Assembly: GCF_964194025.1 (NCBI RefSeq)
Contig: NC_134469.1
Span: forward strand, 40,982,001 to 41,046,000
DNA length: 64,000 bases
Origin: Convolutriloba macropyga
Lineage: Eukaryota
Direction of reading: 5' to 3'
Part shown: piece after piece, positions 1,450-44,001 of the stretch
Layout of the letters: each line of letters begins with the position of its first letter
Position numbering within the stretch: the first letter of the stretch is position 1
Made by a program: the position numbers and the translations under genes
The notes under the pieces: model-generated
Database searches by the model: none
Told to the model about the DNA's origin: nothing
What the model saw: only the letters and a program-made list of their open reading frames with translations

Positions 1450-4400
1450 TTATTTTTTTATTTTTTGTATTGATAATTGGAAGGTTCACAAAACCATGCA
1501 CATCTCCATTTTTCAGGTCATTATTTCAGTTACCACTGCACTATTAGTTCCCATATATGTGCGACAGCAAATGATTGAGCAGATTAACGTTCAAAGGCAT
1601 GTGTCTGATTAGCTAAAGTGATCGTAAACTTAGTTCTACATGGTTTTGAATGAAATAGGCTTCGATACTGCAATTTCAATAAATTTAACAAAAATTAGAA
1701 GTATATCTTAACAATAAGCTGTCTTGTGTAAAAGAGTCGAGCGCTGAACGTCTTGTTTGATTTTGGGCAGAAAAAAAGAATGAATTGCTGGACCTGCCTG
1801 AGGTCAAGAGATTTTTAATTAATCAATACATACAATATCGTACCTGCCTTTGACAATTTTAGATTAAAGAAAAAAAGTCACATCGCACTAATTGACGGTC
1901 AAAACAAACGTGCTCATCACTCTGGTAATTTTACAAATATTTTGAAATCATTGACACATTTCTTTCAAAGTGATACAAAAATTACTTGAATGTTTAATTC
2001 TTGTTCTGGTATGACCTAGAACTTCTTGCACAATGAGTTCCAGATTGTCGATAGATTTGTCATCTGGCAAGATTGATTTTTCCAGATAAAATTGCATCTT
2101 AGGCATTTTTTTAAACCTAAAAACACTGCAATTCTTAAGATTGAAATTCATGTTGTTTTAGTAACCTCATCGGTGTATCGAATCTAACTCCACTTGAGCT
2201 TGTTGGCATTCGCCTAAATATTTATGGTAAAAAACTTCGATCCAATAGAAAAAAGTAAACAAAGGAAAGAAAAAGTTTGTTTGGCAGAGACTTTTTAGGA
2301 AAATAAAAATTGGCACGGCAAAAAATATGGAAAACTTCGGGACTTCAAAAATAACAGCCGTTGACTCAAAACAATTAAAATATTTTATTACAACAATTAA
2401 AATTTAAATATTTTAAACCGACTATTTGTTAGATAAAATTCCAACAGCTAAAAAGTCATCCAGCTATACAACTTTTTGATAGCGTTAATTGTCAAAATCG
2501 ATGTTTATCTTGCAAAAGCTTTCTTTCATTAAAAAAAAGACAGAAGCTTCCTGCAATTTATTTTCAACGGTTTCCAAAAAAATTAGTGCGATATTTGACA
2601 TATTTTTGAACGACGATAAACAGATATAAACAACTTTCTCTAACAACTTCGATATAGAGAAGAGTAGAGTAAACCGGCCATAATTTTTGATTTTAGCAAT
2701 TGATATTTCCTAAAGTTTGGACTCACAGATCCGATTTTCCGTTCTGTTGGAAAATTTGAAAAATCCTAAAATTTCGGAATAAACTGTTCCCAGATTTAGC
2801 TAACTCAGCAACGGCGTTTCTTGAGAAATACAGCTAGAAGATTGTCCGGACCAAAACTTTTCTTCTCGTTTATTTTTCTAATTATTGTTTATATTATTAT
2901 TATCAGTTATACTATTTTTATTATTTTTTTATTATTATTAGAAACTTCAAAAAATCTTGAACCTCTTCAATTAATATTTTTGTAAGGTCATTTCCTCATC
3001 TAACACTGGAAATTTTCGGTTTTGGCAACAGCAATCACCATGCAGATGAACGTCCAATTGCATTGGTCTGAATTGTTAAGTAATAGTAAAATAGTTCTAC
3101 GTGTTTTCAGTGAATTTTGCTCGGTACTGTAGGTAGTTCAATCAATTTTACAAAATTAGAAGTAAATCTGATCAATAAGATGTCTTGTGTAAAATGTTCG
3201 AGCGCTGGACCTCCGTTTGATTTTGGGCAGAACTAACAAATTGCTTGACCTGTCTGATGTCGGGATTTTTAATTAATCAGTATACGCAATATCTTACCTG
3301 CCTATGACAATTTTTGATGAAAGCAAAAAATTAGATTGTACTAAAAATACATTAAGATATATTAGACTCTCTTTATAACTTAAAAGGGAACTATACGTCT
3401 GGTTACTTTCAAAATTTCTCTTCTAATTTTGTTCTTGACAGCATGTATTAATCGGACGCAACGTGATGATAGAAACAAACGTGCTCTTCACTGCACTGTA
3501 GTAATAAAACAGAGATTCTGAGTTCATTGACACAAGTTTTTCCATTTGATAGGAAAAACTATTGGAATTTTTAATTCTTGTTTTGATAAGAGCTAGAAAT
3601 TTTTGTACAACGAGATCACAATCTTCGGCAGATTTATCATCTTGCAAGATTGGGTTTCCTTGATAAATTAGTTTTTGTTTTAATCTTAATTCATATCAAC
3701 CTAAAACAATGCATTCAAATGTTTAACTTACAGATTATGCTTGTTGTGGATTATGTTTACAATTGATTTGATGTTTTATTTGGGAAAATTTTTTCTGGGA
3801 CTGTTTTGTCTTGGACGGTTTTTGTTCTGGTAATGTTTTTTCCGGACACACAACAAAAACGTCATAATTGGAAGAAACATCTTGATGTCAGATGACGGCA
3901 GAAGAGACACCAATGGTTGATAGCAAGAATTGAGTAAGTCGAGTTTTATCTAGCAAAAGCGTTATAAAATTAAAAAAGAAAAGCAGAAAACTCATGTCGT
4001 TTGTTTTTAAATGTTTTCCCGAAAGGTCACTGAGATAAAAAAAGTAAGTTGTAGAAAAACCAAACACCAATAATTCTAATATGGAATTGAGCAGATTTAG
4101 CATGTTTTCGAGCGAAAATGAACAGATATAAATCACTTCTTCTAACAACCTTGATATAAGATATAGTAGAGTAACCCGGCGATAGTTTTCAATTCTGACA
4201 ATTGATCTTTTCTTAAAAGTTGGATTCACAACTCCCATTTTCCGTTTCACTGGATAATTGGAAGAATATAAAATCTCTGAGTGAATTCTTCATAGAACTA
4301 GCGAACTCAGCAAAACGTTTCTTGACAAATACAGCTGGAAGATTTTCAGGACCACAATTTATCTTCTCATCAATTTTTCTAGTTTGATAGCACATGTTCT

Positions 4401-20007: not shown

Positions 20008-20640
20008 ATGGTTCATGTTATAGCTGCCAGCTCACTCCATTACGCGTTGAAAAATGTTCGATACAGTGAAAAGAAGGATCGGATCCCCTGACAAAAATAA
20101 CAACAGTACCTGAACTTTCTTTCAACCCCAATACAAGAAGTGGTTGAAAAACGCACAGAATCTTCCGGTCAAGGACCGATATTGATCACAAGGACTGAAA
20201 TAGTGGTGTGGCATGATCTAATTATCAACAGCATCTCAAGCCACAAATCGATTAACCACAGACCAAGTAGTGTACAAGAGCTGACAAACTACTTGGCATG
20301 AATTGGAACAAATTAAAGCGCTGGTTTACTGGCAGCGTACTGGAGTCCCGGATACTTTCAAAGAGTATTTGAGGACTGGGATACTGATTCTGAGGGTGAC
20401 AAAACACCTGATTTCGAAGCGGAAGGCCAAAACACAGCTGGGAGGATACAGTATGCTGCAACAAGGACCGGCACACGAGATCAGGTCACTGGAAATTCTT
20501 CGGCGCCACAAAACACTGGTAGAAAAAGCACAGATCGAGAGTGTAGCTCCTGAGCAAAAGGGGTTCGTTTCCCCCTGTCCTCGGGCGGGCTTCTGTGATG
20601 TGCAAACTTCTACCAGAACCTTGGCTCTGATACATTCTTA
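20008..20640 (+). pseudogene. Divergent SGNH/GDSL-like ORF upstream of the PLE RT
   Basis: MVHVIAASSL..TVPELSFNPN..VVWHDLIINSISSHKS..IKALVYWQRTG..TGILILRV; homologous to 50860-51513 (-). Fold assignment is inferred. Confidence 0.5.
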
Positions 20641-39000: not shown

Positions 39001-39559
39001 TTGCATGATTTTTAATTATTCTGGTAAATATCTAAGCTCAGGGACTCCTAATTGGTGTTACGAATATTGAGGTCTCCTTTGATAGCAGTATTAGCAAGAA
39101 TTCTTTCTCTGTCTTATGTTGATCTTATTTAGGAGCGCCCTGATTTTTTCGGTAGGATTTCTGTAAAGGCTTGAGTAAGGCGGATTATAAGGACAGGATA
39201 GGTTAATTTGACTGACTGTGTTTTTGATATTAATTATTGCTCATTCGGCTTCAGTTTGAATGCTGACTGCATTGCAAGACTTAAGATTTTTGACTGCCAT
39301 AAGAATTCCATGCCTAGAGTTGATATCGCTAGGTCTGTATTCCCTTTGCATAGCCTAATTGTTGCGATAAACTTATTTAATTGCAGTTTCTTTGCTATTT
39401 GATAAGTGGTGTTTCAGTTAAGGTTACTGTCGACGATCGGGAAATATTTTTGGACTGCCCTAGAAAAAAGATTTTAGAGTTCTGGTTAATGTGAAGTGCG
39501 ATCTTAAGGAATTCCAATTATCAAATTTATCTGTTTGAGTCAAGTGAGAAATCAACGCG

Positions 39560-42500
39560 ATTCTCAAAAACAAGAAAATCAAGTACCGGTTGGGGCCGAA
39601 AAAACACGAATCATCAGAATTCCTGGTTAGGCAGAAAAATCAGGTTAAGCAGAATTCCTGGTTAGGCAGAGTCATCAGAAGTCCCGGTTAAGGCAGAAAA
39701 ATCGTGAACGTCAGAAGTCCTGACAAGGGCAGAGTCTACAAATATGGACAACAGTATGACTCTTCTCTCGTTTTGCAACTCTGGAACACAGAAAATTGAT
39801 CACAGTAAATTGTCCAGCCTGTCGTAAGGTTGATCATTTAAGATGTGCGGGACTCGGAATGCCTTTGAAAGAACATATGTTTGGAACTGTGTAGATTGTG
39901 GACTGCATTCTCTGGGTGCACTCACTGCTATTGTTGGAACTGAAACAAAAAATAACTGCATTAGAATCTGTCCTCGAATATATCAGGTCGCTGAAACTAG
40001 AGGTCACTGCACTAAATATAGCTCGGTCGTACAGAGAACAACGAAGAATAAAAATACCTACAGCCCTGAAAACAAAATTTTTGGTTTTGAACTCGCAGGC
40101 CAAAGTAATGCTCCAAAGTACAGCTCAAAAAGACATAAACCTGACGACGAGAATGACGATGATGCAATGAACACTGCGGATTTTCCGGCGAGAATGAAAA
40201 CAACACGACCACGAAGGCAAAACTTTGGTACGAAGCAGAGCCATGATGATTTCAATGGTATCAAGAAAAACCTAGGCGACACTTTTCTTGGGAGTCTAAA
40301 TTCAATTTGTACAAACTATGTTTAGAAACTGGTGTAGTGATTGCGGTGCCAGTGTACTCCACTTGCGAGAAATTACAAAGGAAGGCTCAAAACCTAAAAA
40401 CTTTTACCTATTTTCCTCTGATGATGCCTATGAAGCAATTTTGGAGGACAGTTTTTGCCCAAGCAATGTAGTTCACGGACCATTTTTTTTTAATTATCAT
40501 GCTCGGAACTGGTTGAGATCACTCCCACCAGACACTTCCCATAAATCTTGACTCAAAATATTACTTGTGGACTTGTAAATGCACGTTCAGTCAGAAATAA
40601 AATTGAGCAATTTGAAGAAGAAATTTTTGATCATTGATTACGATATTTTCTCTATTAATGACTCTTGGATCTCGTCGAATATTGATGAAATTTGGATAAT
40701 AAAGCAACTCTACTCCAGTTCTTACTTCATCATTTCAATCTTCCAAGAACATATGCAAAAGGTGGTGGTCTCATTGCCATTGGTAAGAGACACTTAAATT
40801 TCACGCTCACTTCACACAACTGCATTCTGTTTTTAGGGTACGCATGGTTTCAGTTGAATACTAATAAAATTGTTAATTTGTTTGCTGTCTTGTCCGCCAA
40901 TTGATAACTCTTTGTTTTTGAAAAGTTCTTTATGACGATGTGTTGCCATCTTCACTGTCAAGGCATGTTGTTATGGGTGATTTTGGTCTTCCCCATAGAA
41001 CCAGGTTCACTATTTTTTTTAGGAGAATCAAGTTTTATCTCCGACTGAGAGGGGAAATATTTTTTGACCTAATCATTTAAAATAACTGCAAAAAAGTAAT
41101 TATTATCAGTTAAGGAAGTGAGTTTCTCGGATCATAAATTAATCAAATTCTTGACGGCATCGAAGGTAACAGCACAACAATCTTCTGTGTATTCAGAAAA
41201 TATGGAGAAATATGGACTGGAAAGAGATTAGCGATGCTTTGAAGTTACCGTTAGCTGTCAATCAGCACATCACAAAGCAACATGTGCTTTCAGAATTGCT
41301 CGTTGACACTTTCGTCGAAGCTGTGAAATATAATGTACCCGCTGCACAGCGCAGCACAAAAACAAAAATTTGTCCCTTTTTTGACACAGAGCTTTTCTAC
41401 CAAAAAAAATCTCATCCGTGAAAAGAAATTAGCGTAACAACAAGCTTTTTTAAATTATAAAGAGGCTTATAAACAGAACAAAACGATGTACTTCGATAGA
41501 AATGTTAATAAAAACATCAACCTGCTTGTTAAATTTTTAAACTTCAATCGGCCACTTGATGTTTCCACTGAGCACAAGGTTCCAAGAAACTGGGGATCAG
41601 TTAAAATGACCGTTGACCGATTTCAGAAGTTTAGAGACAAGGTGCTTGATATCAGAGAATTAATTCCTACTTCCACTGATATTGGCCTTAATAGCTTGTT
41701 TTTGGTTGATGAGTTTCATCACATCTCAATGTCTCTCCAACAGTTAAAATTAGTGGAAATGAAAATTGTGAGGGAAGCTCTAATTGATACATCAAACCGT
41801 TTTTGCGTGCTAGACGCAGTTTTAACAAGTGCGGCCAAGCTGATTTTTGTCTCCTGGTGTGATCATTTTCTGAATCTAGCTAATAGCAGCTTTGAACAAG
41901 GCACGTTTCCTGATCAAGGAAATAAAGCAATCATAAAGCCATATCTGAAGAAACCGAACCTTGACAATTAATTACCTAGCAGCTATAGGCCGATTGCAAG
42001 TACATTTTTTCGTCTCAAAATTATTAGAGCGATTAGCGGCTGATCAACTTAGGGAGTATCTTTCGGATGTGCAGCAGTCGGCATATAGAGTTGGCCAGTC
42101 GTGGGCTTGGATTTCTCGGCAGCTTTCGATACAATGGATCATGACATTTTTTACTGGGTGCTAGAAAATCTTTTTAAGATCAGATGTAAATTCAAAAGTT
42201 GGATCATGTCTACGTCAGCAAACGAAAACAGAGTACAAATTGGAAACTGTCTCTGCTGAAGAAATTGTTGATTTTGGTTTATCGCAAGGTTCGATCCTTG
42301 GACCCCTGGTTTTTAATATGTATGTGACTCCCATTAGTGATCTATTTAAGCAAATTCAGTTGAGTTATCAGGTATATGGCGATGGTACACTAATTCTTTT
42401 GAGTTTGAGGCGACAATCTTTGGATCATGGAATAAAGGATTTAAACGCGAAATTCAGTCTTTCAGGAGTTCAGCCACATGAAGTTAAGAATAAATCCTGA

Positions 42501-43870
42501 TTCGACTGAAATCGTTTTAATCCCATCAAGAAAGCAAAAACTGAACTTAGCTAAGCTTGAATTAGCAGGGGATACTTTCAAGTTGAAGCCCAATATCAAT
42601 TAACTCGGTATAACGATTTACCAACATCTTTCTTTGACATGGCACATAAACTCAGTAACTTCTTCGTGCTTCGCAAACTTAACAAGATCAGACATTATCT
42701 TACGGTTGAAACGAGAAAACTAGTGGTCCAGAACCTATTAATATCTCGCCATGATTACTGCAGCTCAGTCTTATCAGGAGTACCCAAAACAGAGACTATG
42801 AACTTCCAACAGGTACAGAATGCAGCATGCCGGTTTATCTTTTCACTGAAAAAGATCGAATCATGCAGAGATTGTATGTATCATCTACATTGGCTTCCTT
42901 CCTGTTGATAAACGGATTGATTTTAAAGTAATGATTTTTGTCCATAAATCTGTTCATGTCTTGTGCCGTACTATTTGAATCATCTAGTCGAAATTCAACC
43001 TAACCGGTGCAGGAAAAGATCAGTAAATGCTTTCAAGGCTGTCTTAGATCAGTCAAAAGTTCTTATGTTGACAGACCTTTTTGCATTCGCTGTCCCAAAT
43101 TATTGAACAAACAGAAAGTACCTGCATTTTGGGATCATCTCTTGTGTTTGGTATTTTATTGAAAATAGTGTTACAATTTCATGTTCAAGTGGTAGTATAT
43201 CTACTATGTGCTCTGAAAGCGTCTTTAAAGAAATTTTTGACAGAAATGTACGCCAAGTTATTTTGATGACAGGAACGAATAATCTATTTGACAAGAAAAG
43301 TGAACGATTGGTCGGGCCCGATTGATGAAATGTTCCATCTTATTCAGAAATTGAGGTTTTACCGTTTTCATGTTTGAATTCTAGTTAGAGCTAGTTAGTC
43401 GACGAGGTAAAGCGGAAACATATGCTAGATTGAACTATTGTCACAGTGATATTGCTCGAGAACTGAATGCCCCCCTTTGTATCATTGCAGAAATTTAAGG
43501 CTGCGAAACACTCAAGCGAAGATGGAATCCATCAAAATCCACGAAATTCGAAAATTTTCCTCCTATTTCAGACGTACCATAAAGCACGCTGAACTCTATT
43601 ACACTGCCAGACGATTTCAGTAAGAGCACGGTTAGTGCTGAAGATTTTAATTACGGTTTATATCAATTATTTAAGATGTATGCGGTACGACCTATCTAAC
43701 GATATTCCAGGTCTGGTTGAGTGAGAATTAATGCTTTGAATTGTCTGGTTAAGGCAGATGAACACTCCTTGATGCTCAGCACACCCCACTTTTGTGTGCA
43801 GAAAGGGTGGATAAAGAAAGACCAACACTACTACATGTGTAATCAGGGTTGAATAAAGCGCCATTTGGTA
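39560..43870 (+). mobile_element. Decayed near full-length L2-type LINE (5' tandem repeats, PHD-ORF1, APE, RT, L2 C-terminus, C-terminal SGNH esterase)
   Basis: 5' repeats CAGAA(T/G)TCCTGGTTA.GGCAGA (39605-39735); PHD NCPACRKVDHLRCAGL..WNCVDC (~39790-39900); KGGGL, SDH; AIIKPYLKKPNLD..SYRPI; QGSILGPLVFNMY..YGDGT; ISRHDYCSSVLSG..QNAACR..LHWLP. Confidence 0.9.
43123..43570 (+). pseudogene. SGNH/GDSL esterase remnant directly after the L2 ORF2 C-terminal motif
   Basis: Block I CILGSSLV (43123), block III VILMTGTNNL (~43260-43285), block V EDGIH (43518-43532). Confidence 0.8.
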
Positions 43871-43959
43871 TGTCACGAGTAAACAGGTATCGGTCAAACA
43901 TACGATGTCACAGTATCCGCATGCTGTTGCGTTTGCTAATTCAAATCGTCGTCCAAAAT

Positions 43960-43962
<3 letters not shown>

Positions 43963-43994
<32 letters not shown>
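43963..43994. repeat. (TA)n microsatellite between two convergent LINE 3' ends
   Basis: Direct reading. Confidence 0.95.

Positions 43995-44001
<7 letters not shown>

Follow-up and report, generated by a model that had tools for sequence, protein, structure and literature searches.

LINE esterases are usually viewed as ORF1 proteins of a Gag-like kind, which are made first and in excess and are tethered by a coiled coil. Esterase ORF1 proteins of CR1/L2/RTEX LINEs are reportedly described in the 2003 work of Kapitonov and Jurka. In the published elements the esterase is a component of ORF1 and is located 5' of the reverse transcriptase (RT) (PMC4120745, PMC3905857, PMC5408684), in agreement with the premise from which an earlier, sequence-only reading of the present locus had started. 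The survey of domains in PMC4120745 covered only those 5' of the endonuclease. In the zebrafish ZfL2-1 element, a transposon-specific histidine (H191) is situated four residues before the oxyanion Asn (Schneider et al., PMC3905857), and a lipid- or membrane-directed activity has been proposed for the ORF1 protein (ORF1p) of this element (PMC3905857). Esterase genes in a downstream position, namely a GDSL esterase encoded by ORF3, are known from the bdelloid Vesta LTR retrotransposons and Athena Penelope-like elements (PMC5408684).

In the window, that is, the whole 64-kb stretch of DNA analysed here, the remnant of an SGNH esterase is located 3' of the RT of a LINE and directly abuts the end of ORF2. 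We propose that a three-gene LINE of the CR1/L2 group (ORF1, ORF2, ORF3 and the 3' UTR) has left a decayed copy at this locus, and that the esterase has been kept as a gene of its own while at least two families diverged in this genome, and likewise in stand-alone relatives from other assemblies. Taken as a whole, the reading that the esterase is a separate, selected 3' gene of the LINE, and that its apparent fusion to ORF2 is an artefact of a deletion, is in our judgement very likely to be correct.

Gene order and expression of the intact element

Four young full-length copies of the family that includes the window copy (family A; L031, L032, L033 and L035) show a mutual identity of 98.5-99% over a unit of 4.98 kb, of which they share the first and last bases, while the flanks are unrelated. 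All comparisons were made between natural copies only, and not with a consensus, repaired or ancestral sequence. ORF1 of family A comprises 297 aa from the first ATG; its sole Pfam match is a PHD finger (E 4e-4), and no similarity to the esterase profile is observed (hhalign probability 0.15%). Besides the PHD finger, ORF1 probably contains a coiled coil. The single-sequence structure model of ORF1 is poor (pLDDT 47) and gives a hint of an RRM-like beta-alpha-beta-beta-alpha-beta topology at the C-terminus (residues 206-288); both PHD-only and PHD+RRM variants of ORF1 are known from the L2 as well as from the CR1 subgroup (PMC4120745).

The stop codon of ORF1, TGA, is in frame with ORF2 (L032 and L033; L032:4080-4140, equivalent to approximately 40549-40554 in the window), and in the same two copies there is no ATG near the start of ORF2, where the endonuclease motif comes immediately. 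Thus, the sequence suggests that ORF2 is made by stop-codon readthrough or by a non-AUG restart. ORF2 comprises 946 codons and has the domain order of a LINE, with the N-terminal APE endonuclease (Pfam Exo_endo_phos, residues 17-207) followed by the RT (RVT_1, residues 498-744, E 1e-29); its C-terminal tail is complete (GDRAF..GPKLWNKLP.. and approximately 30 further residues) and is followed by a TAG stop.

The ATG of ORF3 is located 1 nt past this stop, in the +1 frame, and is followed by an open frame that comprises 215 codons in total; upstream of the ATG, the same frame is open for approximately 25 codons, overlapping the end of ORF2. About 30 loci have this junction, which reads TAG-T-ATG or, in an older subfamily, TAG-C-ATG. 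The full open ORF3 is kept in seven of the 26 family-A loci examined, a small fraction as expected, since the copies decay. Past ORF3, the 3' UTR of approximately 225 nt contains an 8-9-bp hairpin, a spacer of about 20 nt and a (TAC)n tail, and the LINE-like combination of a 3' stem-loop with a short tandem-repeat tail is found in both families described here, A and B. Candidate target site duplications (TSDs) of 4-7 bp were observed at L031 and L032; those at the window copy are ambiguous. By their sequence, the window element and family A would be assigned to the CR1/L2 group of LINEs, where the label "L2-type" derives from the tail motif only.

Family B was recognised via protein P0004, which matches a locus of this genome with 100% identity; two other candidate proteins, P0028 and P0147, proved not to belong to this genome. 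Copies of family B are 95-100% identical among themselves, and their ORF3 shares 55% identity with its family-A counterpart. The tail of the family-B ORF2 is normal (GSRAF..GPKKWNALP..), with TGA as the stop, and the ORF3 ATG is located 20 nt past this stop, in the +2 frame. The terminal hairpin and the tail are conserved between the families, with one compensatory pair (TTT/AAA in A vs TCT/AGA in B). Thus far, the order of ORF2 followed by ORF3 is seen in two families of one genome only.

Several arrangements of family-B sequences were observed in addition. At least eight ORF3 3' fragments (residues ~59-208) occur with a period of approximately 1.13 kb at G000:C1:60892225-60900802, an arrangement suggestive of a tandem array that arose from the LINE 3' end. 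At L038:2680-3618 and at G000:C8:57874238-57877882, two copies follow each other head to tail at a distance of about 3.1 kb, the second copy being 5'-truncated and beginning directly past the tail of the first one. The (TAC)n tail of the copy at L045:1-1048 is expanded to a pure trinucleotide repeat of several hundred bases to approximately 1 kb. The 5' UTR of family A contains three copies of a 14-nt motif, CGGTTAGRGCRGAA, with 37-nt spacing, just before the ORF1 ATG (L032:3081-3168). This motif is also found at least five times in the 3' UTR of family B, directly past ORF3 (L038:2180-2370), and hence is situated at opposite ends of the two related families.

As for the translation of ORF3, the full-length LINE RNA could serve as the message, so that ribosomes that have finished ORF2 would restart at the ATG close to its stop. 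Judging from the sequence, the chances that such a restart is the route actually used seem to be roughly even. In both families, the ORF3 ATG has A at position -3 and G at position +4, and in family B the ORF2 stop itself reads UGAAUG, opening a mini-ORF of 17 codons that overlaps the ORF3 ATG. Coupled translation of ORF1 and ORF2 occurs in some LINEs, and a restart after ORF2 would parallel this. Restart past very long ORFs, here of 946 codons, is normally inefficient in eukaryotes, and this is one of the considerations in favour of another possibility, namely that ORF3 is a LINE gene with its own message, produced from an internal promoter, as a spliced or subgenomic RNA, or by read-through of 5'-truncated copies. 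The latter are the majority of copies and yet keep ORF3, and no structured element was found at the junction, where the predicted RNA structure is no better than in shuffled sequences (z -0.02); the same holds for the fold over the whole 3' UTR (z -0.66). However, if ORF3 were initiated independently, conservation of a tight stop-to-start spacing would not be needed, and hence the 1-nt spacing conserved in family A, together with UGAAUG at the stop of family B, argues against a separate message, which we consider rather unlikely.

The ORF3 protein, its relatives and selection

The Pfam matches of ORF3 are divergent, with 24.3 bits (E 5e-5) to Lipase_GDSL_2, below the gathering score of 32.9, and 16.3 bits to Lipase_GDSL, below the cut-off of 23.6. 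Its AF2 model, built on 12 homologues (pLDDT 77.6), has the three-layer alpha/beta/alpha fold of SGNH hydrolases. Foldseek matches the model to SGNH hydrolases (TesA, GDSL lipases) with E of about 1e-7 (1.6e-7 and below), and VIA yields Z 15-17 over residues 44-206, with rmsd of 2.0-3.6 A over 153-183 residues for the top-ranked matches. The model resembles E. coli TesA, GDSL lipases, sialate O-acetylesterases and PAF acetylhydrolase (PAF-AH 1wab, Z 14.9). Sequence searches of PDB with ORF3 alone and with the family profile yielded a chance match only (E 0.2-0.4), and the ZfL2-1 structure 4c1b was absent from their results.

The catalytic set of ORF3 comprises Ser53, Gly70, Asn100, Asp182 and His185. 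Ser53 is at the nucleophile position of block I (ILGSS, with GSS instead of GDS), the oxyanion hole is formed by Gly70 of block II (CPGG) and Asn100 of block III (GTNN), and block V reads D182-G-I-H185. In 10 representatives of the family, Gly51, Ser52, Gly70, Asn100, Asn101 and His185 are invariant, whereas Ser53 and Asp182 are each retained in at least 90%. Met96, located four residues before the oxyanion Asn (the equivalence follows from the alignment of block III), is invariant in the family as well. Both the N- and the C-terminal tails are basic. Only about 45 residues precede block I, and the model places one short helix there (residues 10-20, low model confidence) and no coiled coil. 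By sequence and structure model, ORF3 is predicted to encode a stand-alone SGNH (GDSL-type) esterase with all catalytic residues.

The 10 representatives, which extend down to 37% identity, are approximately 200-226 aa long, have the catalytic residues invariant or nearly so and share an N-terminal extension (..R.C.V....P.RRI..). In nine of them the protein has its own Met at the homologous position, and the tenth begins a few residues in. Stand-alone relatives of about 210 aa are also present in other assemblies. A search of 1.84 billion representatives showed the family to be small, with 228 matches at E <=1e-3, of which 18 had E <=1e-30. Of the 18 matches listed at E <1e-30, those of at least approximately 100 aa, 14 in number, all align at or near their own first residue, the lengths being at most 231 aa; four begin 21-52 residues in. 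Every strong match is a short protein that stands alone. No RT-sized protein was found among the 150 best relatives in this library. Among the weaker matches (E 1e-8 to 1e-5) are proteins of 340-700 aa whose esterase is C-terminal and in some cases situated behind coiled-coil-like regions, that is, in the ORF1-type architecture. Scans of viral and metagenome sequences retrieved no relative.

Between families A and B, the differences in ORF3 are distributed over the three codon positions as 0.39/0.26/0.61 (chi-square p 2e-12), and pN is 0.32 vs pS of 0.78, the latter being saturated. Owing to the saturation of synonymous sites, at which NG86 and YN00 fail, the comparison of the families comprises pN/pS and codon-position counts only. 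By these counts, ORF3 is under selection. Many of the least-diverged copies of both young families have an intact ORF3.

These observations bear on the possibility that ORF3, being catalytically dead or a relic, is carried along as a passenger and contributes nothing to retrotransposition. Such an interpretation could draw on the non-canonical blocks (GSS vs GDS in block I, GTNN vs GxND in block III), on the sub-threshold Pfam score and on the finding that the ORF1p of ZfL2-1 is dispensable in HeLa assays (PMC3905857). However, even the most distant representatives conserve the nucleophile Ser, Gly and Asn of the oxyanion hole, and the Asp and His, the codon-position bias is accompanied by pN well below pS, and the intact frames of the young copies point in the same direction, making a mere passenger improbable. 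If, as we propose, ORF3 is a selected gene, it may have an accessory role in the assembly or transport of the RNP through interaction with lipids or membranes, acting as a free protein without a coiled coil. By analogy, it is about an even question whether this would be the same accessory job that has been proposed for the ORF1 esterases of LINEs.

Structure of the copies and origin of the RT/esterase junction

ORF3 lies inside the 4.98-kb unit in every copy examined. Nearly all full-extent matches share one 3' end base, while their starts vary; in particular, four 5'-truncated copies (L019, L025, L026 and L027) start inside ORF3, at unit positions 4199-4345, and stop at the common 3' end. As these copies show the 5'-truncation signature of LINEs, the RNA that is retrotransposed includes ORF3, which is located 5' of the 3' recognition end. 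ORF3 is an integral gene of the LINE.

Derivation of the esterase from a different element, as the ORF1 or 5' ORF0 of an element inserted after the LINE or adjoining it, would be in line with other LINEs of this genome, where an ORF1 esterase directly precedes the endonuclease (L068, L070, L073), but it is rejected as extremely unlikely given the structure of the copies: ORF2, ORF3 and the 3' UTR are continuous, with an identical junction, at about 30 or more independent loci, the ends of the unit are fixed in four copies with unrelated flanks, truncated copies run from ORF3 to the LINE tail, and the hairpin and tail 3' of ORF3 are conserved in both families.

The window copy (Table 1) is an old one, 87% identical to L032, from which it differs by nine deletions of 10-243 bp (blastn and global alignment). 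Its 5' start (TAGCCTAATTG..) and its 3' end match those of the four young full-length copies, and the homology between the copies stops at position 43834. An (AT)18 microsatellite at 43960-43995, approximately 125 bp past the end of the LINE, is outside the element.

Table 1. Features of the LINE copy in the 64-kb window (positions of the window)
Feature	Position	Strand	Basis and remarks
Decayed full-length LINE copy (family A, ~4.98-kb CR1/L2-type)	39351-43834	+	blastn and global alignment vs L032:2850-7831
5' UTR region	39587-39698	+	three 14-nt CGGTTAGRGCRGAA motifs with 37-nt spacing in young copies; one remnant here, 39685-39698
ORF1 remnant	39744-40551	+	PHD finger ~39770-39899; no esterase; coordinates mapped from intact copies
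ORF2 remnant	40552-43112	+	APE endonuclease ~40599-41144; RT ~41975-42618; tail motif 43057-43112; shortened by deletion
Break point of the 243-bp deletion	43112-43113	+	corresponds to L032 6846-7088
ORF3 remnant (SGNH esterase), frameshifted	43113-43623	+	profile HMM, translation, mapping of the stop
3' UTR	43624-43834	+	terminal hairpin ~43785-43810; short (ACT)n tail 43827-43834

In the three-frame translation of 39400-44000, the ORF2 tail (..SYVDRPFCIRCPKLLNK) is directly followed by esterase-like pieces (CILGSSLV, TISCSSG, ILMTGTNNLFD and SEDGIH), with the frame shifting between them. When every six-frame ORF piece of the 64-kb window was searched with the profile HMM built for the esterase family, only four pieces matched, all on the plus strand and in different frames (43072-43263; 43107-43322, E 9e-25; 43385-43495, E 2e-7; 43467-43589, E 2e-4), which jointly span profile positions 44-190. 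The upstream ORF of the Penelope element in the window (20008-20640) has no match to the ORF3 profile. The esterase remnant starts just 5' of block I, retains blocks I (ILGSS), II (CSSG), III (GTNN) and V (DGIH), and has its original TAA stop at 43621-43623. Thus, a frameshifted esterase remnant abutting the ORF2 tail is real, far beyond chance.

To establish how the two sequences came together, other copies are decisive. The genome of the window (1.18 Gb) was searched at the DNA level with window positions 42600-43900, which yielded at least 75 matching pieces. In all other copies found, the sequences before 43112 and after 43118 are separated by approximately 240 bp. In the window, a 243-bp deletion took the 3' end of ORF2 (34 codons and the stop) together with the ATG and about 46 codons of ORF3. 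Since all other copies keep these ~240 bp, the damage is private to the window copy, and the apparent ORF2-esterase fusion is an artefact of this deletion.

A fusion protein made directly, or via a programmed frameshift or readthrough at the end of ORF2, might still be imagined, as the ORF2 tail motif of the window runs into esterase sequence and the open frame of ORF3 overlaps the end of ORF2; nevertheless, we reject it as scarcely credible, because the alignment to intact copies, which have a stop and a change of frame at this place, shows the deletion, because the differences between families A and B in the spacer (1 vs 20 nt) and the relative frame (+1 vs +2) leave no conserved frameshift site, and because nearly all representatives have their own Met, with no RT-sized protein among the 150 best relatives.

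The sequence-only reading had thus correctly located both the tail motif (..YVDRPF..PKLLN) and the esterase pieces adjoining it, and its description of ORF1 as having a PHD finger and no esterase agrees with the intact copies. Its central claim, that the esterase is fused to ORF2 and replaces the usual tail, does not hold, as the other copies have a complete tail and a stop; nor do the RT and the esterase share one frame in them, a stop, a change of frame and a separate ATG being present in all intact copies of both families. It had suggested relocation of the domain either to ORF2 or to a 3' ORF3, and it is the second variant that we observe, in the form of a separate 215-aa esterase ORF in another frame. 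It had also named an outcome that would speak against it, in which other copies end with a normal tail and the esterase belongs to ORF1 of a separate inserted element; the normal tail was indeed found, the inserted element was not.

Other esterases of the genome and comparison with known systems

The same genome contains a classic LINE with the esterase in ORF1 (L068, L070 and L073; e.g. L070:1300-2301, minus strand). The frame comprises 334 aa and includes a Cys motif, a coiled-coil-like stretch and the SGNH esterase, with the endonuclease ORF directly after it. Compared with the ORF3 profile, the esterase of L070 yields an hhalign probability of 90.5% (E 1.4e-6); the residue four positions before the oxyanion Asn is His in this ORF1-type esterase and Met in the ORF3 family. 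A stand-alone esterase of 208 aa with the canonical GDS (L074:1324-1947; G000:C3:26087020-26087643) matches the ORF3 profile with a probability of 99.75%, the N-terminal extension being included in the match, and by its sequence is clearly a distant member of the ORF3 family; no RT was found within 1.3 kb upstream of it. One more group consists of 228-aa esterases (e.g. G000:C5:33204516-33205022), which are 35% identical to L074 and intact at at least six loci. Finally, two open frames of 539 and 665 aa (L066:433-2049 and L067:1141-3135, minus strand) have a C-terminal SGNH domain above the Pfam cut-off and may be host genes or proteins of other elements.

Full-text searches of the literature retrieved no LINE described with an esterase gene 3' of the RT. 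The 3' esterase gene is a new positional variant of a known accessory gene of retroelements. A broader interpretation, to which we would give somewhat less than an even chance, is that this is the first described lineage of APE-type LINEs with a 3' gene for an accessory enzyme, and that the esterase is a portable cassette that can occupy either end of the RNA and acts in trans. If so, numerous 5'-truncated, seemingly "dead" copies retaining ORF3 and the 3' tail could supply the esterase to active elements.

A conserved separate esterase behind the RT does not fit the Gag-like picture of ORF1. As the ORF3 protein would be the last to be made and would probably be scarce, has no multimerisation domain and is still encoded by 5'-truncated copies, an enzymatic, trans-acting role seems to be favoured over a structural one, and the arrangement provides a natural test of the function of the esterase in retrotransposition. 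Surveys restricted to the sequence 5' of the endonuclease, such as that in PMC4120745, would miss esterase genes located at the 3' end.

The closest described protein is the Type IV ORF1p, exemplified by zebrafish ZfL2-1 (PDB 4c1b). Like ORF3, it comes from an APE-type LINE of this broad group and is an SGNH esterase whose catalytic set is intact, with arginine-rich segments beside the enzyme; the ORF1-type esterase of L070 and ORF3 also share G-x-N-N in block III. However, the Type IV esterase is located in ORF1, 5' of the RT and behind a coiled coil, whereas ORF3 stands free as a third gene 3' of the RT, lacks a coiled coil and carries its own conserved N-terminal extension. The position equivalent to H191 is occupied by His in the ORF1-type esterase of this genome and by an invariant Met in the ORF3 family. 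Thus, none of the features that define Type IV, namely the ORF1 position, a coiled coil before the esterase and the transposon-specific His, is seen in ORF3.

By position, counterparts are found outside LINEs. In Vesta and Athena, as here, a stand-alone GDSL/SGNH esterase with intact catalytic residues is encoded by an extra ORF downstream of pol, although these are LTR and Penelope-like elements, respectively, rather than LINEs. In the Ngaro (tyrosine-recombinase) retrotransposons, an extra SGNH ORF likewise follows the last of the replication enzymes and closes the coding region on its 3' side (PMC9210276); however, these belong to another order of retroelements, with split direct repeats and neither an APE nor target-primed reverse transcription. 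With the element described here, LINEs join the LTR, Penelope-like and Ngaro elements as carriers of a downstream SGNH gene.
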